Source of the DNA: Leucoraja ocellata
Taxonomy: Eukaryota
DNA length: 64,000 nucleotides
Direction: 5' to 3'
Assembly: GCA_036785375.1 (NCBI GenBank)
Contig: JAWMAR010003751.1
Span: 1-64,000, forward strand
The number at the start of each line of letters is the position of its first letter. The stretch's first letter is position 1. Under the pieces are notes generated by a model. It was not told the DNA's origin, searched no databases, and worked only from the letters and a program-made list of their open reading frames with translations. Positions 1-45,623 of the stretch are shown here, in pieces. A program made the translations under genes and the position numbers.

Positions 1-307
1 ATACAATCACCGAAACAGATCACAGTTACTGAAGGCGGGACTGTGCGACTAAACTGTGCATTTGTTGGCGACACAATCAGTTCAATTGGGGCCATTAGTT
101 GGTACAAAGACGTGGAAACTCGTGCCGTTTCCAACACGAGCGGCGACTATTATGGTCGCGTTCTGAAAAATAATTCACCGGGAATTCTAAATGAATCCAT
201 CGACATCACTGACCTCAACATGAACGATACAGGAAGGTATTACTGCCGAGTGCGTGTTTTCACAGGGGAAATATATAATGGTCACGGCACAGATGTCACG
301 GTCACAC
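1..307 (+). CDS. Ig V-set (pre-joined VJ-type) exon V1 of an NKp30/NCR3-like receptor, unit A; 5' end outside the window; frame open
   Basis: Frame 1 reads IQSPKQITVTEGGTVRLNCAFVGDTISSIGAISWYKDVETRAVSNTSGDYYGRVLKNNSPGILNESIDITDLNMNDTGRYYCRVRVFTGEIYNGHGTDVTVT. It has the B-strand Cys, C-strand Trp, DxGxYYC and a J-like GxGTxVTV. Phase-1 donor C|GTAAGT at 307/308. By eye it resembles NKp30 (IGSVTWFRD...FRGRL...YVCRVEV...GNGTRLVV). Confidence 0.85.
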
Positions 308-434
308 GTAAGTTTGCGGTACATTAACTTTGTCTTTACTGTTCTAAAAAACATTCTCACACCGGCCACCACACGCCTGAACAACCGAGCTTTGTCAGTT
401 TAGATTTAGGCACAGAAATTCATTATATATTTGT

Positions 435-700
435 AAGCCATTTAGGACTGGGATGAGAAAACACATTTTCACCCAGGGAGTTGTGAATCTGTGGAATTCT
501 CAGCGTCATAAGGCAGTGGAGGCCGGTTCCCTGGATGCTTTCAAGAGAGAGTTAGATAGAGATTTAAAGATAGCGGAGTCAAGGGATATGGGGAGAAGGC
601 AGGACGGGGCACTGATTGTGGATGATCAGCCATGATCACAGTGAATGGCGGGGCTGGCTCGAAGGGCCGAATGGCCTCCTCCTACACCTATTGTCTATTG
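435..700 (+). mobile_element. CR1 LINE 3' fragment (paralogs ~22017-22320 and ~42277-42578)
   Basis: RKHIFTQGVVNLWNS...FKRELD (ORF2 C-terminus), GGGCCGAATGGCCT 3'-UTR hairpin and TATTGTC tail. Confidence 0.85.
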
Positions 701-1439
701 CCCACACCGGCCAACAATGTCCCAGCTACACTAGTCCCACTTGCCTGCGCCTGGTCAATATCCCACAAAACCTGTCCTATCCATGTACCTGTCCAACTGC
801 CTCTTAAACGATGGGATAGTCCCAGCCTCAACGACCTCTGGCAGCTTGCTCCATACACCGACTATTCTTTCCATCGAAGCGCAATCCAGTTCCTCCTTAA
901 TTCACATGCACGCTCCGCTCACTCCGACTCCTCCATATATCAGGGTAAATTACACCTGTTCATTCCCCTATCAGGACGCACGTCTTTGGGATGAGAGAGG
1001 AAGCAGTAACGTCCAGGGGTAACACAGGGAATAACACGGAGAACGTGCAAACTCCACACCGGCAGTCAGCATTGAGGCCGGGATACTGGCCCTCAGAGGC
1101 AGCAGCTGCTTCGGCTATTCCCTCAAGCAATCAAGGTGGAGATAAAAGGAACAGCAGATGCGGGGTTACAAACAAAAAGACACAAAGTGCTGGAGTAACT
1201 CAGCGGGCAACGCAGCATCTGTGGAGAACATGGATAGGTGACATTGTGGAATGCTGAAGAAGGGTGCCGACCTGAAATGTCGCCTATACACGGGGTTTGG
1301 AGATTGCATCCTTCACGTGGTCCGCCCTGTTTCGACGAATGCAATCAACCTGGTGTGCACAATCAAATAAGGTCAAATAGAACAAGTTGTCCAACAACTT
1401 TGGGCAATGTACGCCATACGCAAGGAGAGGAATCGTATA

Positions 1440-1883
1440 CATGTTCTCCACAGATGCTGCCTGACCCGCTGAGTTACTCCAGCACTCTGTGAAACATCAC
1501 CTATCCATGTTCTCCACAGATGCTGCCTGACCCGCTGAGTTACTCCAGCACTCTGTGAAACGTCACCTATCCATGTTCTCCACAGATGCTGCCTGACCCG
1601 CTGAGTTACTCCAGCACTCTGTGAAACGTCACCTATACATGTTCTCCACAGATGCTGCCTGACACGCTGTGTTACTCCAGCACTCTGTGAAACGTCACCT
1701 ATACATGTTCTCCACAGATGTTGCCTGACCCACTGAGTTACTCCAGCACTCTGTGAAACGTCACCTATCCATGTTCTCCACAGATGCTGCCTGACCCGCT
1801 GAGTTACTCCAGCACTCTGTGAAACGTCACCTATCCATGTTCTCCACAGATGCTGCCTGACCCGCTGAGTTACTCCAGCACTT
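1440..1883. repeat. 66-bp intronic minisatellite, ~6.7 copies
   Basis: Unit CATGTTCTCCACAGATGCTGCCTGACCCGCTGAGTTACTCCAGCACTCTGTGAAACGTCACCTATC. Confidence 0.95.
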
Positions 1884-2051
1884 TGAATTCTATGCAAGAT
1901 TCCCACATCTGTTGTTACTGTTCAGGCAACTGAAGTGTGCGAATTGATCTACGTTTACAATGACAGTGGGGACATCTCGGTGTATAAGAATGGAAGGAGA
2001 CAGAAAGAATCTGGGAAAGTAATTGGTGAACTTGATGTTTTATTCCTTCAG

Positions 2052-2209
2052 CCCGGATCCCTGTAGAAAGCCCTGCATGGGGATTACGTTGGCAGCTGCT
2101 GGTAATGGGAGTGAAACTTGCAATGTTCATTGTGATCAACGTTATAATAGTTTTCATCATCCGCTCATGGGAGTCTTGTGGATTTGCCAGCCGGACAAAA
2201 GAAGCCTAA
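2052..2209 (+). CDS. Stalk + transmembrane + short cytoplasmic exon, unit A (not in the ORF track)
   Basis: Acceptor TTTTATTCCTTCAG|. Phase-1 reading gives (P)RIPVESPAWGLRWQLLVMGVKLAMFIVINVIIVFIIRSWESCGFASRTKEA*, with a ~24-aa hydrophobic stretch containing Lys and Asn. Stop TAA at 2207-2209; donor G|GTAAGA at 2224/2225. Phase matches the V exon donor. Confidence 0.85.
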
Positions 2210-2335
2210 CAGGCTGGTCAAACGGTAAGATGATTGCCAGCTGCATGTGTGGGTTGTATTAGCAGCTGAGGTCACTGGACAATGGTGAATTTTATTGTCA
2301 CCTGCGAGGTGCCACCACAGTGAAAATATTTCCTT

Positions 2336-2820
2336 ACAAACCAAAACTTAACCATACTTAACCAAACTAAACTAAACTAAACTCAGCTAAACTCAGCTAA
2401 ATTAAACTTAACTTATCAAAACAAACTTAACTAAACTTAACTAAACCAAACTAAACAAAATAAACTAACCTAAACTAAAATAAATAAAATTAAAATAAAT
2501 TACACTAAACTAAACTAAACTAAACTAAACTAAAACAAACTTATCTAAATTTAAACAAACGAATCCAAAGCATAGCAAACGAATCTAAACTAAACTAAAT
2601 TAACCTAAACTAAACAAAGAAACGAAACTAAAATAAACTAAACTAAACAGAAATACTCTAAACGAAACGAAGCTTAACTAAACTAAGCTTAACTTAACTT
2701 AACTAGACAATAACAAACTTAACTAAATTTAAATAAACCAAACCAAACAAAATTAAACTAATCTAAACGAAACTAAACTAAACTTAAATTAACTTAAATT
2801 AACAACTAAACTAATCTTCA
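2336..2820. repeat. (CTAAA/CTTAA)n degenerate pentanucleotide microsatellite (paralogs ~8995-9285, 24132-24290, 44155-44700)
   Basis: Direct inspection. Confidence 0.95.
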
Positions 2821-2842
2821 ATACATTCAGTTCCATTGAAAT

Positions 2843-3175
2843 CCCACACTCCCTTGGCCACGCTCTCATTACACTCCTACCATCAAGTAGAAGATATCTG
2901 AGTCTGAAAACCGTGACCACAAGGTTCAAGAACAGCTTCTTCCCTGCAACTATCAGGCTCTTGAACATCACAGAAGACCAGGCTCAACTATGAACATGAA
3001 TGGACTTCCTTGTGTTGCACCAAGGATCTTGTATTTTCGTGTTTGCCCCAGATACACATTTATTTTTGGTTTTGTTTATTATATTTTATCTAAGTGTGTT
3101 GTATGTACAGGCCTGTTACGCTGCTGCCAGTAAGAATCCCATTGTCCGGTTGTCGGTACAACAAACTTAGATAAA
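2843..3175 (+). mobile_element. Rex1/Babar-like LINE 3' fragment (paralogs ~9310, 24316, 44726)
   Basis: Translates as ...HALITLLPSSRRYLSLKTVTTRFKNSFFPATIRLLN, typical of the Rex1-type ORF C-terminus. Confidence 0.6.
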
Positions 3176-3562
3176 ATATAATCAACAAAACCAACAACAA
3201 ATTTGTAACTAGTGCAAACCCTCTTGAATCTTGCAACGTAGACTTACTGCAACATAACAAAGGCGACATGACAGGGAAAACTAGACCGAACCTGGCCAGA
3301 AATAAGGAGCTCATACAGGACTTGGATGGTACATGGATAGGTGGGTTTAGTGTAGCTGAGACATGTTGGCCGGTGTGGGGAGTGTGGGCCATAAGATCCT
3401 GTTTCCACGCTGTATCACTCCATGACTCTATGACTAGGAGCTATGTGGACACATACTTGACAAGAACTTTAATAACAATAATGTAGTCAATTGTGTTCAA
3501 TGCTATTGATGTTTTTGTGCCTGTACATGTGGTATAATAATATATCTCTTTTATTTTCACAG

Positions 3563-3740
3563 ACCATAAGTGTTGAACTCCCTACATATTTGAATCAACT
3601 CATCCAACAGATCAAACCATGAAAAGCAAACTCATTACTGAATCAACATTAGCTCAGTCAGCTGTGGTGATACTGTTGTGGGCCATTTGGGATAATGTAA
3701 TTTGTGAAATCTTACACTCATTAAAACTCCACATTGCCTT
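3563..3740 (+). other. Terminal 3'-UTR exon of unit A with ATTAAA polyadenylation signal at 3720-3725
   Basis: Strong acceptor TTTTATTTTCACAG|ACC; non-repeat sequence conserved in four copies; ATTAAA followed by a U/GU-rich tract (CTTCTTGTTTGTT). The 3' end is approximate. Confidence 0.65.
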
Positions 3741-3805
3741 CTTGTTTGTTCGTTCCTGACAACAACAGATTCATGTCAGAGTGGTTACATTTCAAACGCA
3801 GACCA

Positions 3806-4158
3806 TTAGACAATAGGCAATAGACAATATTTGGTCTGCAGTGTACAAGCCCAGCCGCTCCATTCTCTCAGCACATAACATTCCCGCCATCCCTGGAATT
3901 AACCTTGTAAACCTACGCTGCACTCCCTCAATAGCAAGAATGTCCTTCCTCAAATTAGGGGACCAAAACTGCGGATAATACTCCAGGTGTGGTCTCACTA
4001 CGTCTCTGTACAACTGCAGAAGGACCTCTTTGCTCCTATACTCACCTCCTCTTGTTATAAGGGCCAACATGCCATTCGCTTTCTTCACTGCCTGCTGCAC
4101 CTGCATGCCCACTTTCATTGACTGATGAACAAGGACCCCCAGATCCTGCTGCACCTCC
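3806..4158 (-). mobile_element. CR1 LINE fragment (paralogs ~10274-10628, 25275-25618, 45689-46038)
   Basis: ORF 3792-4154: QVQQAVKKANGML...RPHLEY..QFWSP...VQRRFTRLIPG. Confidence 0.9.
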
Positions 4159-4169
4159 CCAAGCGTCTA

Positions 4170-4470
4170 TACCCTGTGAAGAAGCGTCTTCACCTGAAAC
4201 CTCACCAATTCCTTTTCTTCCACAGATGCTGCCTGACCCGCGGAGTTACTCCAGCTTTTTGTATCTATTTTCGGACAGTCCTCTTGTGTTCCATTTGCTG
4301 ATGGATCTCCCGGTTTCAAACCATTTTAACTCTCCTTCCCATTCCCACACCGACCCCTCTGCCCTGAGTCTCCTCCATTGCCTGAGTGAGGCCATTGGAG
4401 AAACTGGACCTCATTCTCCATCTCGGTAGCTTAGAACCCAATATTGAACTGTGAATTTTCTAATGTCAGA
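4170..4470 (+). mobile_element. Penelope-like element remnant (GIY-YIG C-terminal region plus degenerate terminal repeat); paralogs ~10640, 25630, 46050
   Basis: DLPVSNHFNSPSHSHTD...LSLLHC resembles the Penelope endonuclease 'PVAxHFN' motif; adjacent degenerate hammerhead-type repeat. Confidence 0.6.
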
Positions 4471-4796
4471 TCACGCCAGTTCAGGCGACAGTTCGAGCTC
4501 GACAAACGAATCTTCGACACCAAGGTGTCTCGGCCACAAGATGGCGCCACAATGGTGTGATTTGACAGAGATTGTTACAGGTTGTAATAATAGACCAATA
4601 ATGACACTTTGTTAATAGGATCTTGTTCATGTTCTTTATATAATGACAACAATTTATCGCTGAATGATGTGCGCTGGAAAGTTATTAAAAGTCCCGCTGT
4701 ATCCGAAACTGTAATAAGTCTCTTCTGTTACATGGATTGTCTGCAGAACAAAGCATTTCACTGCATCAAGGTACATGTGAGAATCAAGTGTCATTA

Positions 4797-5025
4797 GGGC
4801 GGCCCGGTGGCGCAGCGGTAGAGTTGCTGCTTCCAGCACTTTCAGCGGCAGAAACGCAGGTTCGTTCCCGACTACGGGTACTGTCTGTACGGAGTTTGTT
4901 CGTTCTCCCCGTGACCTGTTGTCTCCGAGATCTTCAGTTCATCCCACACTCCAAAGAAAAACAGGTTTGTAGGTTAATTGGCTCAGTATATATGTAAATT
5001 GTCCCTGTTTCCGCGCTGTTTCTCC
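4797..5025 (+). mobile_element. tRNA-derived SINE (HE1/V-SINE-like); further copies ~12061-12260, 20790-21090, 27031-27320, 41147-41448, 47437-47715, and minus-strand 41605-41740, 56480-56760
   Basis: A box GGTGGCGCAGCGG, B box GGTTCG(A/T)TCC and the conserved ...CCCACACTCCAAAGAC...GGTTAATTGG core. Confidence 0.85.
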
Positions 5026-7076
5026 AAAACATAGAAACATAGAAAATACGTGCAGGAGAGTCGAATGGCCTATTCGACCCTTCGAGCCAGCACCGCTATT
5101 CATTGTGATCATGGCTGATTATCCCCAATCAATGACCCGTGCCTGCCTTATCCCCGTATCCCTTGACTCCACTAGCCCCTGGAGCTCTATCTAACTCTCT
5201 CTTAAATCCATTCAGTGACTTGGCCTCCACTTCCCTCTGTGACAGGAAATTCCACAAATTCACAACTCTCTGGGTGAAAAAGTTTTTTTCTCACCTCAGT
5301 CTTAAATGTCCTCCCCTTAATTCTAAGACTGTGGCCCCTGGTTCTGGACTCACCCAACATTGGAAAAAAATTCCTGCATCTAGCTTGTCCAGTCCTTTTA
5401 TAATTTTATATGTTTCTATAAGACATCCCCTCATCCTTCTAAACGCCAGTGAATATAAGCCTAGTCTTTTCAATCTTTCCTCATATGACTGTCCCGCCAT
5501 CCCAGGGATCAATCTCGTGAATCTACGCTGCACTGCCCCAATCACAAATATGTCTTCCTCAAATTCGGAGACCAAAACTGTACACAATACTCCAGATTTG
5601 GTCTTTCCAGAGTCCTATACAACAGCAGAAGAACCTCTCTACTCCTATACTGAAATCCTCTTGTAATGAAGGCTAACATTCCATTAGCTTTCTTTACTGC
5701 CTGCTGTACCTGTAAGTCAACTTTCAGTGACAGGTGTACAAGTACGCCTAGGTCTCGCTGTACCTCCCCCTTATCTATCCTAACCCCATTGAGATAATAA
5801 TCTGCCCCCTTGTTTTTCCGCCAAAGTGTATAACCCCACATTTATCTATATTATACTGCATCTGCCACGCATCTGCCCACTCACTCAACCTGTCCAGGTC
5901 ACCCTGCAACCTCCTAACATCCTCTTCCCTGTTCACGCTGCCACCCAGCGTTGTGTCATCCGCAAACTTGCTAGTGTTGCTCCTAATTCCCTCTTCCAAA
6001 TCATTAATATATATGGTAAACAGTTGCGGCCCCAACACTGAGCCTTGCGGCACTACACTCGCCACTGCCTGCCAATCCGAAAAGGACACGTTCACTCCTC
6101 CTCTTTGCTCCCTGTCTGCCAACCAATTTTCTATCCATGTCAACACCCTACCCCCAATACCATGCACTCTAATTTTAGTCACCAGTCTCCCGTGCGGGAC
6201 CTTATCAAAGGCTTTCTGAAAGTCTAGATACACTACATCCACTGGCTCTCCTTCATTCATTTTACATGTCACATCCTCAAAAAATTCAGAAGATTAGTCA
6301 AGCGTGATTTCCCCTACATAAATCCATGCTGACTTGGACTAAGCCTTTTAGTGCTATCCAAATGCCCCATTATTACCTCTTTAATAATTGACTCCAGCAT
6401 CTTTCCCACCACCGAAGTCAGGCTAACTGGTCTATAATTCCCCGTTTTCTTTCTCGCTCCTTTCTTAAAAAGTGGGATAACATTAGCTATCCTCCAATCC
6501 ACAAGAACTGATCCTGAATCAATTGAACATTGGAAAATGATCACCAATGCGTCCACTATTTCTAGAGCCACCTCCCTGAGAACCATCAGGCCCAGGGGAT
6601 TTATCATCCTTCAGTCCCATTAGCCTACCCAATATTATTTCTCGCCTAATGAAATTTTATTTCGGTTCCTCTACCCCTGTAGATCCTCAGTCCTCCAGTA
6701 CATCTGGGAGATTGTTTGTGTCTTCCTTAGTGAAGACAGATCCGAAGTACCTATTCAACTCTTCTGCCATTTCCTTGTTACCCATAATAATTTCACCCGT
6801 GTCTGCCTTCAAGGGACCCACATTTGACTTTGATATTATTTTTCCCTTAACATATGCAAATAAGCTTTTACTGTCCTTCTTTACATTCCTGGCCAGCTTC
6901 CCCTCTTACTTGATCTGTTCAGCCCGTATTGCCCGTTTTGTTTCCTTCTGTTGTCCCATAAAAGTTTCCCAATCCTCTGGCTTCCGGCTACTCTTTGCTG
7001 CATTATACATTTTTCCTTTTAATTTTATACTAACCGTAACTTCTCTTGTCAGCCACGTTTGCCCCCTACTCCCCTA
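5026..7076 (-). mobile_element. Degenerate CR1 LINE, 3' ~2 kb of ORF2 (RT)
   Basis: VYLDFQKAFDKVPH, VPQGSVLGP, KFADD and NYRPVSLTS motifs across frameshifted ORFs; (ACATAGAA)n tail. Confidence 0.95.
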
Positions 7077-7776
7077 AGAATATGTCTTCCTTTTTGGACT
7101 AACTAAACTAAACTGGTCTAAACTGAACGAAACTGAACATTATTGAATCTCTGAATAGGTGACGTTTCGGGTGAGAGCACTTATTCAGACTTTGTGTCTA
7201 TTTTCGTAAACCAGCATTTGCAGTTCTTTGTTTCTACAATATATACAGTTGTTTCTGCTATAACTCGACGTTGCTTCTTGAAGCAACCTCGCCATTATGA
7301 CAATTGGAAACGAGGGTTTGGGCTCGAGTGTTTCTGAAATTAACTCTTAACCCCCAGACAATTCTCCAAAATAATGAGAAAATCCTTGAAAAAATACACA
7401 TATATATATAGCTTGCATATATATTTTGTATATATTTATATATATATAGCTTACATATATATTTTAGCTTGCAGTAATACAGATATATATATATATATAT
7501 ATATATGCTTCCACTATTCCACTATTCCACTGTATATATATATATCTGTATTACTGCAAGCTAAAATACTGATGTTACATTGTTAAATCGAATAGTATTG
7601 TACAATATATTGCTTGTAAATTTCAATAGCTTCCTGCAGCGAAACCGACAGCCTGAGTTCTTAAGAAAGAATGATCATTGATTACTACAGGGAGGTTACA
7701 TGGAAACAGTTTTTCGTTATTCCCGACTGTTTTTCCACAAGGCCGGTTTTTTTCCTGCATGTAAATTTGTATAATA

Positions 7777-8856
7777 CAGTGGCTTGCAAAAGTTTTACAA
7801 ACCCCATGAACTTTTCCACATTTTGTCACGTTACAACCACAAATGTAAATGTATTTTATTGGGATTTTATGTGATAGACCAACACAAAGTGGTGCAAAAT
7901 TGTGAAGTGGAAGGAAAATGATACATGGTTTTCAATTTGTTTTACAAATAAAAAACTGAAAAGTGTGGCATGCAAAAGTATTCAGCCGCCCTGAGTCAAT
8001 ACTTTGTAGAACCACCTTTCGCTGCAATTACAGCTGCAAGTCTTTTGGGGTATGTCTCTACCAACTTTGCACATCTAGAGACTGAACTTTTTGCCCATTC
8101 TTCTTTGCAAAATAGCTCAAGCTCAGTCCGATTGGATGGAGAGCGTCTGTGAACAGCAATTTTCAAGTCTTGCCAGAGATTCTCAATTGGATTTAGTTCT
8201 GGACTTTGACTGGGCCATTCTAACACATGAATATACTTTGATCTAAACCATTCCATTGTAGCTCTGGCTGTATGTTTAGGGTCGTTGTCCTGCTGGAATG
8301 TGAACCTCCGCCCCAACCTCAAGTCTTTTGCAGACTCTAACAGGTTTTCTTCCAAGATTGCCCTGTATTTGGCTCCATCCATCCTCCCATCAACTCTGAC
8401 CAGCTTCCCTGTCCCTGCTGAAGAAAAGCATCCCCACAGCATGATGCTGCCACCACCATGTTTCACAGTGGGGATGATGTGTACAGGGTGATGTGCAGTG
8501 ATAGTTTTCCGCCACACATAGCATTTTGCATTTAGGCCAAAAACTTCAATTTTGTTCTCATCTGACCAGAGCACCTTCCTCCACATGTTTGCTGTGTCCC
8601 CCACATGGCTTGTGGCAAACTGCAAACGGGACTTCTTATGGCTTTTTTCAACAATGGCTTTCTTCTTGCCAATCTTCCATAAAGGCCCGATTTGTGGAAT
8701 GCACGACTAATAGTTGTCCTGTGGACAGATTCTCCCACCTGAGCTGTGGATCTCTGCAGCTCCTCCAGAGTTACCATGGGACTCTTGCCTGCTTCTCTGA
8801 TCAATGCTCCCCTTGCCCGGCCTGTCAGTTTAGGTGGACGGCCATGTCTTGGTAGG
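7777..8856 (-). mobile_element. Tc1-family DNA transposon, left part (unit A)
   Basis: TA|CAGTGGCTTGCAAAAG TIR; transposase WSDE...[14 protein letters not shown]...[10 protein letters not shown]...[15 protein letters not shown] (DD34E). Confidence 0.95.
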
Positions 8857-8889
8857 CGGACAAAAGAAGCCTAACAGGCTGGTCAAACG
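8857..8889 (+). pseudogene. Orphan 3' remnant of the TM exon (truncated paralog A')
   Basis: CGGACAAAAGAAGCCTAACAGGCTGGTCAAACG|GTAAGA matches the end of the TM exon (2192-2224) and is fused directly to Tc1 sequence at 8856/8857. Confidence 0.8.
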
Positions 8890-10028
8890 GTAAGAGGAAT
8901 GCCAGCTGCATGTGTGGGTTGTATTAGCAGCTGAGGTCACTGGACAATGGTGCATTTTACTGTTACCTGCGAGGTGCAAATATTGTCCTTACAACCTAAA
9001 CTAAACTAAACTAAACTAAACTAAACTAAACTAAACTAAACTAAACTAAACTTAACTAAACTTAACTTAACTTAACTTAACTTAACTTAACTTAACTTAA
9101 CTTAACTTAACTTACTTAACTTAACTTAACTTAACTAAACTAAACTAAACTGAACACAACTAAACTAAACTAAACTAAAACAAACTTAACTAAATTTAAA
9201 CAAACCAAACTAAACAAAATTAAACTAATCTAAGCGAAACTAAACTAAACTTAAATTAACTTAAATTAACAACTAAACTAATCTTCAATACATTCAGTTC
9301 CATTGAAATCCCACACTCCCTTGGCCACGCTCTCATTACACTCCTACCATCAAGTAGAAGATATCTGAGTCTGAAAACCGTGACCACAAGGTTCAAGAAC
9401 AGCTTCTTCCCTGCAACTATCAGGCTCTTGAACATCACAGAAGACCAGGCTCAACTATGAACATGAATGGACTTCCTTGTGTTGCACCAAGGATCTTGTA
9501 TTTTCGTGTTTGCACCAGATACACATTTGTTGTTGGTTTTGTTTATTATATTCTATCTAAGTGTGTTGTATGTACAGCCCTGTTACGCTGCTGCCAGTAA
9601 GAATTCCATTGTCCGGTTGTCGGTACAACAAACTTAGATAAAATATAATCAACAAAACCAACAACAAATTTGTAACTAGTGCAAACCCTCTTGAATCTTG
9701 CAACGTAGACTTACTGCAACAAAACAAAGGCGACATGACAGGGAAAACTAGACCGAACCTGGCCAGAAATAAGGAGCTCATCCAGGACTTGGATGGTACT
9801 TGGATAGGTGGGTTTAGTATAGCTGAGACATGTTGGCCGGTGTGGGGAGTGTGGGCCTTAAGATCCTGTTTCCACGCTGTATCACTCCATGACTCTATGA
9901 CTAGGAGCTATGTGGACACATACTTGACAAGAACTTTAATAACAATAATGTAGTCATTGTGTTCAATGCTATTGATGTTTTTGTGCCTGTACATGTGGTA
10001 TAATAATATATCTATTTTATTTTCACAG

Positions 10029-10206
10029 ACCATAAGTGTTGAACTCCCTACATATTTGAATCAACTCATCCAGCAGATCAAACCATGAAAAGCAAACTCA
10101 TTACTGAATCAACATTAGCTCAGTCAGCTGTGGTGATACTGTTGTGGGCCATTTGGGATAATGTAATTTGTGAAATCTTACACTCATTAAAACTCCACAT
10201 TGCCTT
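10029..10206 (+). other. Terminal 3'-UTR exon copy (A'), ATTAAA at 10186-10191
   Basis: Near-identical to 3563-3740, acceptor intact. Confidence 0.6.
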
Positions 10207-11236
10207 CTTGTTTGTTCGTTCCTGACAACAGCAGATTCGAGTCAGAGTGGTTACATTTCAAGCGCAGACCATTAGACAATAGACAATAGACAATATTTGG
10301 TCTAAAGTATACAAGCCCAGCCGCTCCATTGTCTCATCATATGACAGTCCCGCCATCCCTGGAATTAACCTTGTAAACCTACGCTGCACTCCCTCAATAG
10401 CAAGAATGTCCTTCCTCTAATTAGTGGACCAAAACTGCGGATAATACTCCAGGTGTGGTCTCACTGGGGCCCTGTAAAACTGCAGAAGGATCTCTTAGCT
10501 CCTATACTCACCTCCTCTTGTTATAAGGGCTAACATGCCATTCGCTTTCTTCACTGCCTGCTGCACCTGCATGCCCACTTTCATTGACTGATGAACAAGG
10601 ACCCCCCAGATCCTGCTGCACCTCCCCAAGCGACGATACCCTGTGAAGAAGCGTCTTCACCTGAAACCTCACCCATTCCTTTTTCTCCAGAGATGCTGCC
10701 TGACCCGCGGAGTTACTCCAGCTTTTGTATCTATTTTCGGACAGTACTCTTGTGTTCCATTTGCCTGATGGATCTCCCGGTTTCAAACCATTTTAACTCT
10801 CCTTCCCATTCCCACACCGACCCCTCTGCCCTGAGTCTCCTCCATTGCCTGAGTGAGACCATTGGAGAAACTGGACCTCATTCTCCATCTCGGTAGCTTA
10901 GAACCCTATATTGAACTGTGAATTTTCTAATGTCAGATCACGCCAGTTCAGGCGACAGTTCGAGCTCGACAAACTAATCTTCGACACCAAGGTGTCTCGG
11001 CCACAAGATGGCGCCACAATGGTGTGATTTGACAGAGATTGTTACAGGTTGTAATAATAGACCAATAATGACACTTTGTTAATAGGATCTTGTTCATGTT
11101 CTTTATATAATTACAACAATTTATCGCTGAATGATGTGCGCTGGAAAGTTATTAAAAGTCCTGCTGTAACCGAAACTGTAATAAGTCTCATCTGTTACAT
11201 GGATGTCCATTCTACCGGTATATACACGTATGTGTC

Positions 11237-23856: not shown

Positions 23857-24014
23857 GCCGGATCCCTGTAGAAAGCCCTGCATGGGGATTACGTTGGCAG
23901 CTGCTGGTAATGGGAGTGAAACTTGCAACGTTCATTGTGATCAACGTTATAATAGTTTTCATCATCCGCTCATGGGAGTCTTGTGGATTTGCCAGCCGGA
24001 CAAAAGAAGCCTAA
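23857..24014 (+). CDS. Stalk/TM/cytoplasmic exon, unit B (frame intact although all unit-B V exons are broken)
   Basis: (R)RIPVESPAWGLRWQLLVMGVKLATFIVINVIIVFIIRSWESCGFASRTKEA*; donor at 24029/24030. Confidence 0.8.
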
Positions 24015-25031
24015 CAGGCTGGTCAAACGGTAAGAGGATTGCCAGCTGCATGTGTGGGTTGTATTAGCAGCTGAGGTCACTGGACAAGGTGAATCATATT
24101 GTCACCTGCGAGGAGCCACCACAGTGAAAATTTAACTGAACTTAACTGAACTGAACTGAACTTAACTTAACTTAACTTAACTTAACTAAACTAAAACAAA
24201 CTTAACTAAATTTAAACAAAACAAACTAAACAAAATTAAACTAATCAAAGCGAATCTAAACTAAACTTAAATTAACAACTAAACTAATCTTCAATACATT
24301 CAGTTCCATTGAAATCCCGCACTGCCTTGGCCACGCTCTCATTTCACTCCTACCATCAAGTAGAAGATATCTGAGTGAAACCGTGACCACAAGGTTCAAG
24401 AACAGCGTTTTCCCTGCAATTATCAGGCTCTTGAACCCCACAGAAGACTAGGCTCAACTATGGACATGAATGGACTTCGTTGTGTTGCACCAAGGATCTT
24501 GTATTTTCGTGTTTGCACCGGATACACATTTATTTTCGGTTTGTTTATTATATTTTATCTAAGTGTGTTGTATGTACAGCCCTGTTACGCTGCTGCCAGT
24601 AAGAATTCCATTGTCCGCTTGTCGGTACAACAAACTTAGATAAAATATAATCAACAAAACCAACAACAAATTTGTAACTAGTGCAAACCCTCTTGAATCT
24701 TGCAACGTAGACTTACTGCAACATAACAAAGGCGACGTGGCAGGGAAAACTAGACCGAACCTGGCCAGAAGTAAGGAGCTCATCCAGGACTTGGATGGTA
24801 CATGGATAGGTGGGTTTAGTGTAACTGAGACATGTTGGCTGGTGTGGGGAGTGTGGGCCATAAGATCATGTTTCCACGCTGTATCACTCCATGACTCTAT
24901 GACTAGGAGCTATGTCGACACATACTTGACAAGAACTTTAATAACAATAATGTAGTCAATTGTGTTCAATGCTATTAATGTTTTTGTGCCTGTACATGTG
25001 GTATAATAATATATCTATTTTATTTTCACAG

Positions 25032-33700: not shown

Positions 33701-33829
33701 GTTGATATGATGATCGGCCTGTTACTAGGGACCCCGGGATCCAATTATCCACGTTTGATCTAGACCCTGACTGCTGTCTAAATAGAGTCTGCACATCTCC
33801 CAATGCACCTCTTGGGGTTACTTGTGGGA

Positions 33830-36385: not shown

Positions 36386-37101
36386 GCACTAAACGTTATT
36401 CCCATATCATCTATCTCTACACTGTAAATGGCTCAATTGTTATCACCTATTTGTCTTTCTGCTGAACGCAACAAAAGCTTTTCACTGTACCTCAGATAGA
36501 CACAAAATCTGGAGTGACTAAATAGACAATAGACAACAGGTGCAGGAGTAGGCCATTCGGCCCTTCGAGCCAGCACCGCCATTCACTGTGATCATGGCTG
36601 ATCATCCACAATCAGTACCCCGTCCCCGCCTTCTCCCCATATCCCTTGACTCCGCTTCCTTTGAGCTCTATCTAACTCAGCGGGACAGGCAGCATCTCTG
36701 GAGATAAGGAATTGATGACGTTTCCACTTCTTCAGACCTCTGTATCTCGGTACATGTGACACTACACTAAACTGAGTGCTGATCCAGATTATCCGATCGG
36801 GCTATGAACGAAATCCCGAATTCTGAATTTGAGATCAATAAACATCTAACTATTGGATCTGCCACTAAGTGGATTGTTTGCCACACATATTTAAATGGAT
36901 TCGTCAACTGTGAGGCACCTAACACCCTCTTTCCTCCGGAAAAGCGGCCCAGCTTGTTCCTTCTGAAGCGGTTTCACAATGTTGCACCCAAGACGTTATT
37001 TAAAAAAAACCCCATCGTGCTGGAGGCACTAAACGGGTCAGGCAGCATCTCTGGAGGTCAAAACAATGAACCACATGTGTTAGTTAATGTCCAGGCATGT
37101 A

Positions 37102-38808
37102 AACATAGAAACATAGAAACATAGAACATAGGTGCAGGAGTAGGCCATTCGGCCCTTCGACCCTGCACCGCCATTCGATATGATCATGGCTGATCATCCA
37201 ACTCAGTATTCCATCCCTGCCTCCTCTCCATACCCCCTGATCCCCTTAGCCACAAGGGCCACATCTAACTCCCTCTTAAATATAGCCAATGAACTGGCCT
37301 CAACTACGTTATGTGGCAGAGAATTCCACAGATTCACCACTCTCTGTAAAAAAATGATTTTCTCATCTCGGTCCTAAAAGACTTCCCTCTTATTCTCAAA
37401 CTGTGACCCCTAGTTCTGGACTTCCCCAACATCGGGAACAATCTTCCTGCATTTAGCGTGTCCAACCACTTAAGAATTTTGTAAGTTTCTATAAGAGCCC
37501 CCCTCAATCTTCTAAATTCTAGCGAGTACAAGCCGAGTCTATCCAGTCTTTCTTCATATGAAAGTCCTGCCATCCCAGGAATCAGTCTGGTGAACCTTCT
37601 ATGTACTCCCTCTATGGCAAGAATGTCTTTCCTCAGATTCGGAGACCAAAACTGTACGCAATACTCCAGGTGTGGTCTCACCAAGACCATGTACAAATGC
37701 AGTAGAACCTCCCTGCTCTTATACTCAAATCCTTTTGCTATGAATGCTAACACGTATTGCAGTATAATGTGGATAAATGTGAGGTTATCCAGTTTGGTGG
37801 CAAAAACAGGAAAGCAGACTATTATCTAAATGGTGGCCGACTAGGAAAAGGGGAGATGCAGCGAGACCTGGGTGTCATGGTACACCAGTCATTCAAAGTT
37901 GGCATGCATGTGCAGCAGGCAGTGAAGAAAGCGAATGGTATGTTAGCTTTCATAGCAAAATGATTTGAGTATAGGAGCAGGGAGGCTCTACTGCAGTTGT
38001 ACAGGGTCTTGGTGGGACCACACCTGGAGTATTGCGTACAGTTTTGGTCTCCAAATCTGAGGAAGTTTAGTATTGCCATAGAGGGAGTGCAGAGAAGGTT
38101 CACCAGACTGATTCCTGGTATGTCAGGACTGTCTTATGAAGAAAGACTGTATAGACTTGGTTTATACTCTCTAGAATTTAGGAGATTGAGAGGGGATATT
38201 ATAGAAACTTACAAAATTCTTAAGGGGTTGGACAGGCTAGATGCAGGAAGATTGCTCCCGATGTTGGGGAAGTCCAGGACAAGGGGTCACAGCTTAAGGA
38301 TAAGGGGGAAATCCTTTATAACCGAGATGAAAAGAACTTTTTTCACACAGAGAGCGGTGAATCTCTGGAACTCTCTGCCACAGAGTGTAGTCGAGGCCAG
38401 TTCATTGGCTATATTTAACAGGGAGTTATATGTGACCCTTGTGGCTAAGGGGATCAGAGGGTATGGAGAGAAGGCAGGTAGGGGATACTGAGTTGGATGA
38501 TCAGCCATGATCATATTGAATGGCGGTGCAGGCTCGAAGGGCCGAATGGCCTACTCCTGCACCTAATTTCTATGTTCCTATGTTTCTATGTTTCTAACGT
38601 ACCATTTGCTTTCTTCACTGCCTGCTGCACCTGCATTCCTACTTTCAATGACTGGTGTAGCATGACACCCAGGTCTCGTTGCATCTCCCCTCTTCCTAAT
38701 CGGCCACCATTCAGATAATAGTCTACTTTCCTGTTTTTGCCACCAAAGTGGATAACCTCACATTTATCCACATTATACTGCATCTGCCATGCATTTGCCC
38801 ACTCACCA
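37102..38808 (-). mobile_element. Minus-strand CR1 3' fragment interrupted by a plus-strand CR1 (37757-38596)
   Basis: (ACATAGAA)n tail at 37102; the insert ends in a (TTCTATGT)n tail and is flanked by ACGTA at 37752-37756 and 38597-38601. Confidence 0.88.
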
Positions 38809-39041
38809 CTAAAGTACAGGTGTAACTCAACTGGTCAGGCAGCGCCTCTGGAGGTGGGAGCGAGGAAGTGCAGAGGCTGGTGGATGCACATCAGAAAGTA
38901 CTGGAGTAGATCAGCGGGTCAGAAGCATCTCTGGAGAATATGGACAGGCGACGTTTCGGGTCTGGACCTCTCTTCAGACGGATTTCCCATTTCTTCCGCA
39001 GATGCTGCCTGACCTGTTTTTGTGTTTGTTTCTGCCCACAG

Positions 39042-39086
39042 GAAGCCGTCCAAAGATGCAGTGGAGTGTGGTCGCTTGGTCCGTTC
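39042..39086 (+). CDS. Leader (signal peptide) exon of unit C, ATG at 39056, truncated by an assembly gap
   Basis: TTTGTTTCTGCCCACAG|GAAGCCGTCCAAAGATG, reading MQWSVVAWSV...; paralog of 17408-17455. Confidence 0.65.
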
Positions 39087-39678
39087 NNNNNNNNNNNNNN
39101 NNNNNNNNNNNNNNNNNNNNNNNNNNNNNNNNNNNNNNNNNNNNNNNNNNNNNNNNNNNNNNNNNNNNNNNNNNNNNNNNNNNNNNNNNNNNNNNNNNNN
39201 NNNNNNNNNNNNNNNNNNNNNNNNNNNNNNNNNNNNNNNNNNNNNNNNNNNNNNNNNNNNNNNNNNNNNNNNNNNNNNNNNNNNNNNNNNNNNNNNNNNN
39301 NNNNNNNNNNNNNNNNNNNNNNNNNNNNNNNNNNNNNNNNNNNNNNNNNNNNNNNNNNNNNNNNNNGGGGTTGTGGGGAAGTGGAGAGAGAGAAGGAGAG
39401 GGAGAGCGTGGGGCGGAGTGTGTGGTANNNNNNNNNNNNNNNNNNNNNNNNNNNNNNNNNNNNNNNNNNNNNNNNNNNNNNNNNNNNNNNNNNNNNNNNN
39501 NNNNNNNNNNNNNNNNNNNNNNNNNNNNNNNNNNNNNNNNNNNNNNNNNNNNNNNNNNNNNNNNNNNNNNNNNNNNNNNNNNNNNNNNNNNNNNNNNNNN
39601 NNNNNNNNNNNNNNNNNNNNNNNNNNNNNNNNNNNNNNNNNNNNNNNNNNNNNNNNNNNNNNNNNNNNNNNNNNNNNA
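39087..39678. other. Assembly gap (N runs) with a G/A-rich island at 39367-39427
   Basis: N characters in the sequence. Confidence 0.99.
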
Positions 39679-39814
39679 CTTGAAACGTTGAGACATAGAA
39701 AGGCCATGATCCTAACGCGAGTAAATGGGATTGTGTAGATAGGTGTAATGGATGGCATTGACAGGGTGGGCCGAAAGGCCAGCGCCGAGACTATAATATT
39801 ATTTCTGGTTTCAG

Positions 39815-40145
39815 GTGCTGTTGGATCCGATGAATCGATCATACAATCACCGAAACAGATCAGTTACTGAAGGCGGGACTGTGCGGCTAAACTGTGCAGT
39901 TGTTGGCGACACAATCCGTTCAATTGGGTCCATTAGTTGGTACAAAGACGTGGAAACTCGTGACGTTTCCAACAGGAGCGGCGACTATTATGGTCGCGTT
40001 CTGAAATATAATTCACCGGGAATTATAAAAGAATCCCTCGAAATCACTGACCTCAAAATGACCGATACAGGAAGGTATTACTGCCGATGGACTAGTTTCA
40101 CAGGGGAAATATATAATGGGCCCGGCACAGATGTCACGGTCACAC
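39815..40145 (+). pseudogene. Ig V exon V5 (unit C), single 2-nt deletion near the start
   Basis: ATCAGTT vs ATCACAGTT in paralogs. The rest is open: VTEGGTVRLNCAVVGDTIRSIGSISWYKDVETRDVSNRSGDYYGRVLKYNSPGIIKESLEITDLKMTDTGRYYCRWTSFTGEIYNGPGTDVTVT. Splice sites intact; 331 nt. Confidence 0.8.
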
Positions 40146-41842
40146 GTAAGTTTGCGTTACCTTAACTTTGTCTTTACCGTTCTCAAAAACATCCTTAACA
40201 CCGGCCACCAACAACGAAACGTTGTCAGATCAGATTTAGGAACCAGGGGGCACAGTTTTGAAAATAAGGGGTAGGCCATTTAGAACGGAGACGAGGAAAC
40301 ATCTTTTCACCCAGATAGTTGTGAATCTGTGAAATTCTCTGCCACAAAAGGCAGTGGATGTTTTAAAGAGGGAGTTAGATTTAGCTCTTAGGGCTAATGG
40401 AATCAAGAGATATGGGGAGAATGCAGGAACGGGGTACTGATTTCAGATGATCATATTGAATGGCGGTGCTGTCTGGAAGGGCTGAATGGCCTACTTCTGC
40501 GCCTATTGTTTTCTGTTTTGTTTTTTTAAATTCCAATGTGCAAGATCAGTCACAGTGTGATACAGTGTGGAAACAGGCCCTTCGGCCCAACTTGCCCACA
40601 CCGGCCAACAATGTCCCATCTACACTAGTCACAGAGTGATACAGTGTGGAAACAGGCCCTTCGGCCCAACTTGCCCACACCGGCCAACATGTCCCATCTA
40701 TACTAGTCCCAACTGCCTGCGCCTGGTCCATATCCCTCCAAATCTGTCCTATACATGTACCTGTCCAACTGTTTCTTAAACGATGGTATAGCCCCAGCCT
40801 CAACTACCTCCTCTGGCAGCTTGTTCCATAAATCGAGCGCCCTCTGTGCGAAAAAAATACCCATGGGATTCTTACTAAATCTTTCCCCCTTCACCTTGAA
40901 CCTGTGTCCTCTGGTCCTCGATTGCCCTACTCTGGGCTAGAGACTGTGCATCAGTGTACGGGATGAAGAGAGAATTGGTGCATAATTTGATATAATCCGT
41001 GCCGATTTCATGGTCGCTTTCGACGCTGTAACATCCATGAATGTTGAAGCACAAAATCGGAATAACAAACATATGACCATTACCTGGCGGGGAAGATGGA
41101 GGAACTGTAAGGAAAGTACAGTGGGTTCAGGAAAGCTGGAGAGAGGGGCAACACGGTGGCGCGGTGGCAGAGTCGCTGCCTTACAGCGCCAGGGACCCCG
41201 GGTTCGATCCTGACTACGGGTTCTGTCTGTACGGAGTTTACGTTCCCCCTGCGTGGGTTTCACCGGGAGCTCCGTTTTCCTCCCACACTCCAAAGACGTA
41301 CTGGTTTGTAGGGAAATTACCCTCGGTAAAAAATTAAATTGTCCCTAGTGTGTGTAGAATAGCATTACTTTGCGGTGACGCTGGTCGACACGGGCTCGGT
41401 GGGCCGAAGGGCCTGCATCCGCGCTGAATCTCTAAACTAAACTAAACCATCACGATAATTGTCCATTGTGGCCGAAATCCCCATTTCTAGAACGAGGCAG
41501 GAAGCCATTTCGTTCCATGGAACAGCAAACCAGTTCCCTCTAAATTCACATTCACGCTCCAGTCACTCCGACTACTCCATAAACCAGGGGTGATTTACAG
41601 CTGCTAATTACCTAACAGGCCGCACGTCTTGGGGATGTGAGGGGATGTGAGGGGATGCACGAACGTACAGGAAAAACGCGGGCAAAATGTGCAAACTGCA
41701 CACAGATAGACAGCATCCGAGGTCAGGATCGAACCCGGATTGTCGCGAGTAAATGAGATTGTCAAGATAGGTGTAATGGATGGCATTGACGGGGTGGGCT
41801 GAAAGGCCAGCGCCGAAACTAAAAGATTATTTCTGGTTTCAG

Positions 41843-42148
41843 GAACTGTTATACAATCACCGTCTAATGTCAACGTTACTGAAGGTGGGACAGTGCGGAT
41901 TAATTGTACATTTGTTGGCAAGACAATTGGGTTCATTAGTTGGTACAAAGACGTGGAAACTCGTGCCGTTTCCAACAGGAGCGGCGACTATTATGGCCGC
42001 GTTCTGAAAAATAATTCACCGGGAATTCTAAAAGAATCCATCGACATCACTGACCTCAACATGAACGATACAGGAAGGTATTACTGCCGAGTGAGTGCTT
42101 TCACAGGGGAAATATATAATGGTCACGGCACAGATATCACGGTCACAC
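41843..42148 (+). CDS. Intact Ig V (VJ-type) exon V6 of an NKp30/NCR3-like receptor, unit C
   Basis: TTTCTGGTTTCAG| (G)TVIQSPSNVNVTEGGTVRINCTFVGKTIGFISWYKDVETRAVSNRSGDYYGRVLKNNSPGILKESIDITDLNMNDTGRYYCRVSAFTGEIYNGHGTDITVT |GTAAGT. Length 306 nt, symmetric phase 1-1. Confidence 0.88.
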
Positions 42149-43321
42149 GTAAGTTTGCGTTACCTTAACTTTGTCTTCACTGTTCTAAAACATCATTCTT
42201 AACACCGGCCACCACACGCCTGAACAACCGAGCTTTGTCAGTTCAGATTTAAGCATAGAATGTCATTTTATAAGCAGGAACCAAGGGCCACAGTTTAAGA
42301 ATAACGGGTAAGCCAATTAGAACGGAGACGAGGAAACACCTTTTGACAGAGAGTTGTGAGTCTGTGGAATTCTCTGCCTCAGAGGGCAGTGGAGGCCGGT
42401 TCTCTGGATGCTTTCAAGAGAGACCTAGATAGGGCTCTTAAAGATAGCGGAGTCAATGGATATGGGGAGAAGGCAGGAACGGGGCACTGATTGTGAATGA
42501 TCAGCCATGATCACAGTGAATGGCGGTGCTGGCTTGAAGGGCCGAATGGCCTCCTCCTGCACCTATTGTCTATTGTCTACTGCCCACACCGGCCAACAAT
42601 GTCCCAGCTACACTAGTCCCACCTGCCTGCGCCTGGTCAATATCCCACAAAACCTGTCCTATCCATGTACCTGTCCAACTGCCTCTTAAACGATGGGATA
42701 GTCCCAGCCTCAACGACCTCTGGCAGCTTGCTCCATACACCGACTATTCTTTCCATCGAAGCGCAATCCAGTTCCTCCTTAATTCACATGCACGCTCCGC
42801 TCACTCCGACTCCTCCATATATCAGGGGTAAATTACACCTGTTCATTACCTATCAGGACGCACGTCTTTGGGATGAGAGAGGAAGCAGTAACGTCCAGGG
42901 GTAACACAGGGAATAACACGGAGAACGTGCAAACTCCACACCGGCAGTCAGCATTGAGGCCGGGATACTGGCCCTCAGAGGCAGCAGCTGCTTCGGCTAT
43001 TCCCTCAAGCAATCAAGGTGGAGATAAAAGGAACAGCAGATGCGGGGTTACAAACAAAAAGACACAAAGTGCTGGAGTAACTCAGCGGGCAACGCAGCAT
43101 CTGTGGAGAACATGGATAGGTGACATTGTGGAATGCTGAAGAAGGGTGCCGACCTGAAATGTCGCCTATACACGGGGTTTGGAGATTGCATCCTTCACGT
43201 GGTCCGCCCTGTTTCGACGAATGCAATCAACCTGGTGTGCACAATCAAATAAGGTCAAATAGAACAAGTTGTCCAACAACTTTGGGCAATGTACGCCATA
43301 CGCAAGGAGAGGAATCGTATA

Positions 43322-43698
43322 CATGTTCTCCACAGATGCTGCCTGACCCGCTGAGTTACTCCAGCACTCTGTGAAACGTCACCTATCCATGTTCTCCACA
43401 GATGCTGCCTGACCCGCTGAGTTACTCCAGCACTCTGTGAAACGTTACCTATCCATGTTCTCCACAGATGCTGCCTGACCCGCTGAATTACTCCAGCACT
43501 CTGTGAAACGTCACCTATCCATGTTCTCCACAGATGCTGCCTGACCCGCTGAGTTACTCCAGCACTCTGTGAAACGTCACCTATCCATGTTCTCCACATA
43601 TGCTGCCTGACCCGCTGAGTTACTCCAGCACTCTGTGAAACGTCACCTATCCATGTTCTCCACAGATGCTGCCTGACCCGCTGAGTTACTCCAGCACT
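43322..43698. repeat. 66-bp minisatellite, unit C (~5.7 copies)
   Basis: Same unit as 1440-1883. Confidence 0.95.
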
Positions 43699-43867
43699 TT
43701 GAATTCTATGCAAGATTCCCACATCTGTTGTTACTGTTCAGGCAACTGAAGTGTGCGAATTGGTCTACGTTTACAATGACAGTGGGAACATCTCGGTGTA
43801 TAAGAATGGAAGGAGACAGAAAGACACTGGGAAAGTAATTGGTGAACTTGATGTTTTATTCCTACAG

Positions 43868-44025
43868 GCCGGATCCCTGTAGAAAGCCCTGCATGGGGAT
43901 TACGTTGGCAGCTGCTGGTAATGGGAGTGAAACTTGTAACGTTCATTGTGATCAACGTTATAATAGTTTTCATCATCCGCTCATGGGAGACTTGTGGATT
44001 TGCCAGCCCGACAAAAGAAGCCTAA
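43868..44025 (+). CDS. Stalk/TM/cytoplasmic exon, unit C
   Basis: TTTTATTCCTACAG| (R)RIPVESPAWGLRWQLLVMGVKLVTFIVINVIIVFIIRSWETCGFASPTKEA*; donor at 44040/44041. Confidence 0.85.
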
Positions 44026-45445
44026 CAGGCTGGTCAAACGGTAAGAGGATTGCCAGCGCCATGTGTGGGTTGTATTAGCAGCTGAGGTCACTGGACAATG
44101 GGGCATTTTATTGTCACCTGCGAGGTGCCACCACAGTGAAAATGTTGTCCTTACAAACTAAACTAAACTAAACTAAACTAAACTAAACTAAACTAAACTA
44201 AACTAAACTGAACTAAACTAAACTAAATTAAACTAAACTAAACTAAACGAAACTCAGCTAAATTAAACTGAACTAAATCAAACTAAATTAAACTAAACTA
44301 AACTAAACGAAACTGAGCTAAATTAAACTTAACTTAACTAAACTTAACCAAACCAAACTAAACAAAATTAAACTAACCTAAACTAAAATAAATTAAACTA
44401 AAATAAATTACACTAAACTAAACTAAACTAAACTAAAACAAACTTATCTAAATTTAAACAAAGGAATCCAAAGCATAGCAAACAAAACTAAACTAAACTA
44501 AATTAACCTAAACTAAACATAGAAACGAAACTAAAATAAACTAAACTAAACAGAAATACTCTAAACGAAACGAAACTTAACTAAACTAAGCTCAACTTAA
44601 CTTAACTAAACAAAAACAAACTTAACTAAACTTAACCAAACCAAACCAAACTAAATTAAACAAATCTAAACTAAACTTAAATTAACAACTAAACTAATCT
44701 TCAATACATTCAGTTCCATTGAAATCCCGCACCCCCTTGGCCACGCTCTCATTACACTCCTACCATCAAGTAGAAGATATCTGAGTCTGAAAACCGTGAA
44801 CACAAGGTTCAAGAACAGCTTCTTCCCTGCAACTATCAGGCTCTTGAACCCCACAGAAGACTAGGCTCAACTATGAACATGAATGGACTTCCTTGTGTTG
44901 CACCAAGGATCTTGTATTTTCGTGTTTGCACCAGATACACATTTATTGTCGGTTTTGTTTATTATATTTTATCTAAGTGTGTTGTATGTACAGGCCTGTT
45001 ATGCTGTTGCCAGTAAGAATTCCATTGTCCGGTTGTCGGTACAACAAACTTAGATAAAATATATTCAACAAAACCAATAACAAATTTGTAATTAGTGCAA
45101 ACCCTCTTGAATCTTGCAACGTAGACTTACTGCAACAAAACAAAGGCGAGCTGGCAGGGAAAACTAGACCGAACCTGGCAAGAAATAAGGAGCTCATCCA
45201 GGACTTGGATGGTACATGGATAGGTGGGTTTAGTGTAGCTGAGACATGTTGGCCGGTGTGGGGAGTATGGGCCATAAGATCCTGTTTCCACGCTGTATCA
45301 CTCCATGACTCTATGACTAGGAGCCATGTGGACACATACTTGACAAGAACTTTAATAACAATAATGTAGTCAATTGTGTTCAATGCTATTAATGTTTTTG
45401 TGCCTGTACATGTGGTATAATAATATATCTATTTTATTTTCACAG

Positions 45446-45623
45446 ACCATAAGTGTTGAACTCCCTACATATTTGAATCAACTCATCCAACAGATCAAAC
45501 CATGAAAAGAAAACTCATTACTGAATCAACATTAGCTCAGTCAGCTGTGCTGATACTGTTGTGGGCCATTTGGGATAATGTAATTTGTGAAATCTTAGAC
45601 TCATTAAAACTCCACATTGCCTT
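45446..45623 (+). other. Terminal 3'-UTR exon, unit C, ATTAAA at 45603-45608
   Basis: Paralog of 3563-3740. Confidence 0.6.

Follow-up and report, generated by a model that had tools for sequence, protein, structure and literature searches.

In sharks, the NCR3 (NKp30) family reportedly comprises several divergent and differentially expressed subtypes linked to the major histocompatibility complex (MHC), and an expanded cluster of NKp30 genes in Xenopus is said to have been described by Flajnik and colleagues in 2012. In the sections of two published texts that deal with the matter, human NCR3 is a single MHC-linked gene, NKp30/NCR3 is treated as the non-rearranging, MHC-linked variable-joining (VJ) gene of sharks, and NKp30-type VJ domains serve as stand-ins for the ancestor of antigen receptors before the split by the RAG transposon (PMC10751288, PMC12227049). 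A further text counts NKp30, in the part that concerns it, among the joined-VJ members of the immunoglobulin superfamily (IgSF) and gives a consensus for the joining (J) strand (PMC11599192), and the NCR3 (NKp30) family genes of sharks are, by its title, the topic of Kinlein et al. 2021 (Immunogenetics 73:333). Here, we analyze a stretch of 64,000 nucleotides from the skate Leucoraja ocellata (contig JAWMAR010003751.1; hereafter the window), in which an earlier note had proposed an expanded cluster of NKp30-like activating receptors, evolving by birth and death and with two or three variable (V) exons per gene.

We consider it likely that the window holds three recent tandem duplicates of a small type I membrane receptor gene of the elasmobranch NCR3 (NKp30)-like family, and that these are partly pseudogenized. 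As assessed by self-comparison, the three tandem units start near positions 1, 21584, and 41851, are each ∼20 kb long, and are 92–96% identical across several kilobases. This likeness, together with the decayed exons that the units contain, agrees with the proposed birth-and-death evolution. Each unit is predicted to consist of one leader, one to three V cassettes, and one transmembrane (TM) exon, a cassette being one VJ-type V-domain exon together with ∼140 bases of intron. Like the NCR3-like genes of sharks and rays, which occur as several diverged copies per genome, the genes in the window have a single-exon, non-rearranging VJ-type V domain and would encode a small type I receptor. They differ in that they form a new locus in another species, in which units of ∼20 kb are repeated in tandem, V cassettes are duplicated, and many exons are broken. 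Human NKp30/NCR3 (PDB 6yjp, 3pv6, 3noi, and 9fww) is built likewise, from a single V domain whose J-like strand contains G-x-G-T, a short stalk, a membrane segment with a basic residue, and a short tail. The Xenopus cluster is reportedly a similar lineage-specific tandem expansion of NKp30-type VJ genes in a different lineage.

A tblastn search of the whole window with one V open reading frame (ORF) located six V-set exons, the number originally counted, and V1, V5, and V6 match the Pfam V-set family (Table 1). The V exons are 86–94% identical in DNA over the portion that they share with V1. All six have the donor CAC/GTAAGT (the slash marks the exon end), and the acceptor cag/ is present in four of the five in which it is visible; V4 has cat instead, and the acceptor of V1 lies outside the window. 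The canonical phase-1 layout put forward before thus holds for the visible V splice sites other than the V4 acceptor, but not for the reading frames, because the phase-1 splicing frame is open in just two of the six V exons, V1 and V6, as determined by aligning the DNA with its flanks and translating it frame by frame. The correct V frame is this phase-1 frame (AVGSDESIIQSP), which was set by alignment with P0001, the skate homologue described below, and V2 to V5 are broken in it. Contigs of organism D match the V exons at only ∼90–95%, so they neither confirm nor remove the deletion in V5. The N-terminal end of V6 is 18 bases shorter than that of the remaining cassettes. Two further claims are borne out: a J-like G-x-G-T-x-V-T-V strand (N-G-H-G-T-D-V-T-V) lies inside each V exon, and a heptamer-spacer-nonamer scan of the 64 kb found no recombination signal sequence (RSS) adjoining any of them. 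The single RSS-like match in the 64 kb is on the minus strand at 40557, inside a repeat.

The three TM exons that had been described are all open, have an AG acceptor, and are 96% identical including their flanks. They read RIPVESPAWGLRWQLLVMGVKL(A/V)(M/T)FIVINVIIVFIIRSWE(S/T)CGFAS(R/P)TKEA-stop. The predicted TM helix has a lysine, plus an arginine at its outer edge, and is followed by a 15-residue tail without tyrosine, which fits the activating-type membrane part that had been claimed. In human NKp30, the basic TM residue is an arginine, whereas the membrane residue in the window is a lysine with an arginine at the edge. A lysine in the membrane and a short tyrosine-less tail make pairing with an adaptor expected, and the receptors would signal through a partner bearing an immunoreceptor tyrosine-based activation motif (ITAM) such as DAP12, FcR-gamma, or CD3-zeta. 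When the window was searched by tblastn with seven relatives, we found no constant (C)-domain exon, no exon for a tail with immunoreceptor tyrosine-based inhibitory motifs (ITIM), and no further immunoglobulin (Ig) exon between V and TM. Because the last residues of P0001 (QAGQTVR) align to read-through of the gtaaga located 3' of the TM exon, this exon is probably the last coding one, and the alignment of the P0001 tail lends no support to a separate exon for the 3' untranslated region.

Table 1. Receptor exons and other features located in the window
Feature	Positions	Strand	Remarks
V1 exon	1..307	+	Truncated by window start; visible part open; phase-1 donor CAC/gtaagt; Pfam V-set 2e-13
TM1 exon	2052..2224	+	Short stalk, TM helix with Lys, 15-residue tail; TAA at 2207-2209
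Leader start, unit 2 (MQWSVVAWFFL)	17422..17455	+	Enters N gap after 34 bases
V2 pseudo-exon	18503..18823	+	Two frameshifts, stops in splice frame
V3 pseudo-exon	19436..19766	+	Frame shifted by 1-base insertion after WYKDVET
V4 pseudo-exon	21558..21889	+	Acceptor AG changed to AT; several indels
TM2 exon	23857..24029	+	Open
Leader start, unit 3 (MQWSVVAWSV)	39056..39086	+	Enters N gap after 31 bases
V5 exon	39815..40145	+	2-base deletion near 5' end; TGA after 17 codons in splice frame; other 94 codons open in a different frame; Pfam V-set 1e-9
V6 exon	41843..42148	+	Intact; phase 1 at both ends; Pfam V-set 9.5e-13
TM3 exon	43868..44040	+	TAA at 44023-44025; gtaaga at 44041
Partial fourth TM exon (3' part only)	8797..8895	+	Followed by gene-tail copy to ∼12262
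Gap pairs, units 2 and 3	17456-18334; 39087-39677		
(F)FLVSG sites	18487-18502; 19423-19435; 21539-21557; 39799-39814; 41827-41842		
66-base tandem arrays, units 1 to 3	1436-1882; 23054-23687; 43318-43698		5.8–6.9 copies
(AAACT)n microsatellites, units 1 and 3	2344-2814; 44155-44697		Directly 3' of TM exon
Acceptor-like site	3547-3576		Acceptor at 3562/3563
GDSL-type ORF	59734-60165		Pfam 1e-13
LINE segment, two copies	50905-52439; 62464-64000		99% identical

The repeated leader that had been claimed is present as far as its start is concerned. The sequence ATGCAGTGGAGTGTGGTCGCTTGG occurs exactly twice, at the two leader starts in Table 1, where no occurrence is expected by chance. The leader splice sites, on the other hand, are not visible: the leader donor, the leader phase, and the length of intron 1 cannot be read because both leaders enter gaps of N, and we infer the phase only from the skate homologue P0001. 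The left flanks of the gaps in units 2 and 3 are nearly identical over the last ∼175 bases, and the right flanks are 89.8% identical over 480 bases. With homologous flanks on both sides, the order of leader, gap, and first V cassette is the same in two independent units. The two gap pairs lie at the same homologous place, just past leader codon 10–11, and short read islands in both consist of GA-rich low-complexity sequence, which may be the reason why these sites failed to assemble.

Several smaller observations were made around the V cassettes. The pyrimidine tract and acceptor 5' of the cassettes translate in frame as (F)FLVSG, which resembles the leader end FLLLSG of P0001; in V6, for which this was checked, a stop codon lies 11 codons upstream and there is no ATG, and the resemblance is either chance or the trace of an old leader. 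V2 has a 36-base duplication of its J/donor end (18824-18860), which creates a second GTAAGT donor after 18859, and the matching site of P0001 contains 11 additional residues (MSTAVTVTVTR). In some copies, splicing from the duplicated donor may make the stalk longer.

The V and TM exons were searched separately against proteins. The sole match of a word-indexed search with the V5 ORF is P0001, an uncharacterized 196-residue protein of the skate Rhinoraja longicauda with the layout leader-V-TM (MQWGVVAWYFLLLSG-AVGSDESIRQSP … one V … TM with Lys). Compared exon by exon using tblastn, its leader, V, and TM parts all match the window, with 62–69% identity in V, 73–78% in the TM/tail including the same lysine, and a leader that begins MQWGVVAW where the window has MQWSVVAW. 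An exhaustive search with V6 returned 531 proteins at E ≤ 0.001, of which 150 were listed and 20 of these identified by source. The ten closest single-V or multi-V proteins among those looked up are all from elasmobranchs, three of them named NCR3-like. Of ten weaker matches, two are from elasmobranchs and eight from lungfish, squamates, salamanders, or teleosts, with diverse annotations (SIRP-beta-2-like, pIgR-like, titin-like, and others). Those inspected in sequence, four in all, are SIRP-like multi-V proteins. A search with profile A4 gave 16 matches, 14 of them elasmobranch and seven named "NCR3-like" by NCBI, and the window V domains are 45–67% identical to those of models so named. Forms with a lysine in the TM helix share a conserved RWQL..GVKL motif, which is found in single-V relatives from Hemitrygon, Mobula, and Pristis and also in the Hypanus protein P0018. 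Relatives with long ITIM-bearing tails (I/V-x-Y-x-x-V/L motifs) occur in Hemitrygon, Hypanus, Narcine, and Heterodontus. Because nearly the same V domain is carried on ITIM tails in other rays, the family is expected to work as paired activating and inhibitory receptors.

A tree was built of 51 V domains, with SIRP-like domains as the outgroup. Database proteins, 33 in number, contributed 48 of the 51, and the window contributed V1, V6, and the part of V5 that is open; the broken V2, V3, and V4 and the first 16 codons of V5 were left out. The window V domains form one clade (97/96), whose sister is the skate protein P0001 (94/95), and together they fall within a batoid clade (86/86) that is a mixture of Lys-TM and ITIM forms. 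This topology fits lineage-specific birth and death within a paired-receptor family. It also agrees with the cartilaginous-fish setting proposed at the outset, as do the elasmobranch sources of the closest named proteins looked up (10 of 10). The phylogenetic check that had been suggested was thus carried out in part: it sets the window V domains apart from the SIRP-like outgroup and in a batoid clade, in a tree that holds no tetrapod NCR3 as anchor. Since the tree is likewise without NITR, CD300, or TCR (T-cell receptor) sequences, these were addressed by ranking a profile against PDB entries instead.

The homologue P0001 also bears on the number of V domains per protein. The earlier note assumed that each gene encodes two or three consecutive V domains, and symmetric cassettes would make this feasible, being phase 1 at both ends and each opening with its own AVGSDESI-type peptide. 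Multi-V proteins do exist among the relatives: P0154 of Mobula birostris (298 residues) is a leader-V-V-TM protein with the same Lys-TM motif, and others have three and five V domains. In the window, however, the extra cassettes (V2, V3, V4, and V5) are all broken in the splice frame, the closest homologue has a single V, and no V-V joint is among the RNA joints listed. We therefore regard multi-V receptors as very improbable here. The note identifies the type of gene and its mode of evolution correctly, and its observation is largely real, but it is wrong about multi-V products in the window. In our reading, the cluster is a birth-and-death set of shark NCR3-family receptors with a single V and adaptor coupling, whose working product would be leader-one V-short stalk-TM, as in the 196-residue skate homologue, and whose spare V cassettes would be products of local duplication that are now decaying. 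As judged from their exons, unit 1 (V1 + TM1) and unit 3 (V6 + TM3, with V5 skipped) could be functional, whereas unit 2, in which all three V exons are broken, is probably dead. It is improbable, in our view, that the cassettes instead form a splicing-based diversity device, in which one leader and one TM exon serve interchangeable phase-1 V exons. Each V exon would then bring its own leader-completion peptide, and alternative or additive splicing would yield different single-V or multi-V receptors. If true, this would be a germline, RAG-free way to vary a VJ receptor, partly decayed in the window; it may be intact in Mobula.

Which IgSF lineage these single-V receptors belong to was assessed with a profile of ten family members (A3) ranked against PDB entries (5215 matches). 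Four human NKp30 entries score 60.7–63.5 bits (E 2.8e-16 to 2e-15) and rank third to sixth among these matches. First and second place go to diabodies of four domains each; no single domain of theirs exceeds 34.5 bits, which is also the score of the best antibody VL domain, and human NKp30 is the best single solved V domain for the family profile. TCR-alpha single chains reach ∼49 bits and SIRP-alpha 44, and the alignment with NKp30 spans the full domain, including the region of complementarity-determining region 1 (CDR1) and the F-G strand. Among the features that characterize the NCR3 family, the window shows a V-set domain with its J-like strand in one exon, absence of rearrangement, and a TM segment with a basic residue and a short tail; the one-V layout is seen in the homologue P0001, the leader-V junction of the window being obscured by the gaps.

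Several results weigh against the reading that we prefer, and the first of these concern the affinity to NKp30. With V6 alone as the query, NKp30 is not in the best 60 of 3947 matches, and with a profile of the window plus skate sequences, NKp30 (34.2–34.7 bits) is outscored by nanobodies (up to 38.4) and by a shark NAR V domain (36.1). Because neither V6 alone nor the narrow profile ranks NKp30 first, the NKp30-like label depends on a chain of two links, a strong one from the window to the batoid family and a moderate one from the batoid family to NKp30. The label proposed earlier thus stands at the level of the family (seven of the 16 A4 matches named NCR3-like, and the A3 profile), but not for V6 alone or for the profile of the window clade. 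A separate elasmobranch VJ-type family outside the NCR3 lineage, for which the NCR3-like name would reflect a habit of annotation and the resemblance would be one shared by VJ domains in general, is conceivable on these grounds, the more so as NCBI names of relatives vary (pIgR-like, SIRP-beta-like, TIGIT-like, IgSF11-like), the nearest non-elasmobranch matches are SIRP-like multi-V proteins, and the tree has no true NCR3 member. We nevertheless find it rather doubtful, considering that the A3 profile puts NKp30 at least 7 bits above every other single solved V domain, with the CDR1 region and F-G strand included, and that SIRP-like domains fall in a clade of their own as outgroup.

Other candidate families were considered as well. 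SIRPs resemble the window genes in having a VJ-type V domain and paired activating (Lys-TM) and inhibitory (ITIM) members. They differ in having C1 domains after V, of which the window has none, in scoring lower (SIRP-alpha at 44 bits versus 63 for NKp30), and in forming a separate clade in the tree; with no C1-type Ig exon after V and a profile score below that of NKp30, the SIRP family was set aside. A rearranging Ig or TCR V gene does not fit either, there being no heptamer-spacer-nonamer at the V exons and no C exon. A germline-joined Ig light chain was ruled out by the lack of a C exon in the tblastn search with relatives. V domains of the CD300/pIgR/MDIR type carry an extra cysteine pair, and this type was ruled out because V6 lacks such a pair, its only cysteines being the two canonical ones at residues 21 and 81.

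The remaining adverse results concern selection and expression. The ratio of nonsynonymous to synonymous change (dN/dS) between open copies is 0.78 (V1/V6), 3.1 (V1/V5), and 1.0 (V5/V6), with 21–26 differences each, and the TM exons differ by no synonymous and 1–4 nonsynonymous changes. There is thus no signal of purifying selection between copies in these small counts, which fit diversifying change and relaxed constraint alike. In a run search, no RNA run was listed as containing the window sequence, and the best DNA runs contain 0.51 of its words. We mapped reads of two raw oligo-dT RNA runs (organism C), of which the tissue is unstated and ∼5% of each was read, and contig runs of organisms A and D to positions 39700–44100. 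The bins of the V5 exon have a depth of ∼3 plus 1 in X23 and 0 in X24, those of V6 have 0 in both, and those of the TM exon ∼0–1. The 15 joints listed, out of 15 + 3712, include no V-TM joint. Both of the two reads concerned have a CA at the site of the V5 deletion, and reads over the TM exon show letters of the TM1/TM2 type; since they differ from the copy to which they were mapped, the few RNA reads come from other copies. High read depths elsewhere in this region correspond to repeats, and X1 (from runs with 0.10–0.17 of the words) covers repeats only, with a depth of 0 on the bins of V5, V6, and the TM exon.

These results would also suit a decaying relic, a cluster whose three units all fail to make a working receptor and whose open exons have merely not existed long enough to acquire a lesion. 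Four of the six V exons are broken, dN/dS is ∼1 with only nonsynonymous changes in the TM exons, there is almost no RNA, and transposons reach up to ∼150 bases upstream of both leaders. Against this, V1, V6, and the three TM exons combine open frames with good splice sites, both leader starts are open as well, fast-evolving immune receptors likewise show ratios near or above 1, and the RNA runs are of unstated tissue and were each read to ∼5%. On balance, a complete relic seems unlikely to us, and partly pseudogenized NCR3-like receptor genes remain our preferred reading.

The cluster adds to a receptor family that is already in print and named in public annotations, rather than constituting a receptor of a new kind. 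Its novelty had been overstated in this respect, NCR3-like names being present in the NCBI annotation. Among the NKp30/NCR3 papers on elasmobranchs and sharks that we consulted, none describes in its main text a batoid cluster with V-cassette duplication. What the batoid tandem cluster shows is gene turnover, by duplication of whole units, duplication of V cassettes, and quick loss of frame, and in rays, nearly identical V domains are found with both activating and inhibitory tails. Such detail is of use in the annotation of immune loci in elasmobranchs, and by itself opens no new question.

Apart from the receptor exons, the window consists of repeats without other genes. Repeat DNA makes up the bulk of each unit and the entire 45.6–64 kb, and includes reverse transcriptase ORFs and a DDE transposase. 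The V-TM intron of all three units contains a 66-base tandem array, an (AAACT)n microsatellite follows the TM exon in units 1 and 3, and the ∼150 bases 5' of both leaders, up to which the transposons extend, look like the 66-base unit reversed. A partial fourth gene copy (8797-12262) consists of the 3' end of a TM exon (TKEA-stop-QAGQTVR) and ∼3.3 kb of tail, 94–95% like the tails of units 1–3, and has no V or leader. At 3547-3576, there is a good acceptor (ttttattttcacag), and a phase-1 V donor joined to it would give H-H-K-C-stop. Just upstream of reverse-transcriptase-like ORFs near the end of the window lies an ORF with a GDSL-type lipase/esterase domain, which is probably ORF1 of a long interspersed nuclear element (LINE). 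A LINE segment is present in two copies, whose 99% identity marks a very recent insertion or duplication.

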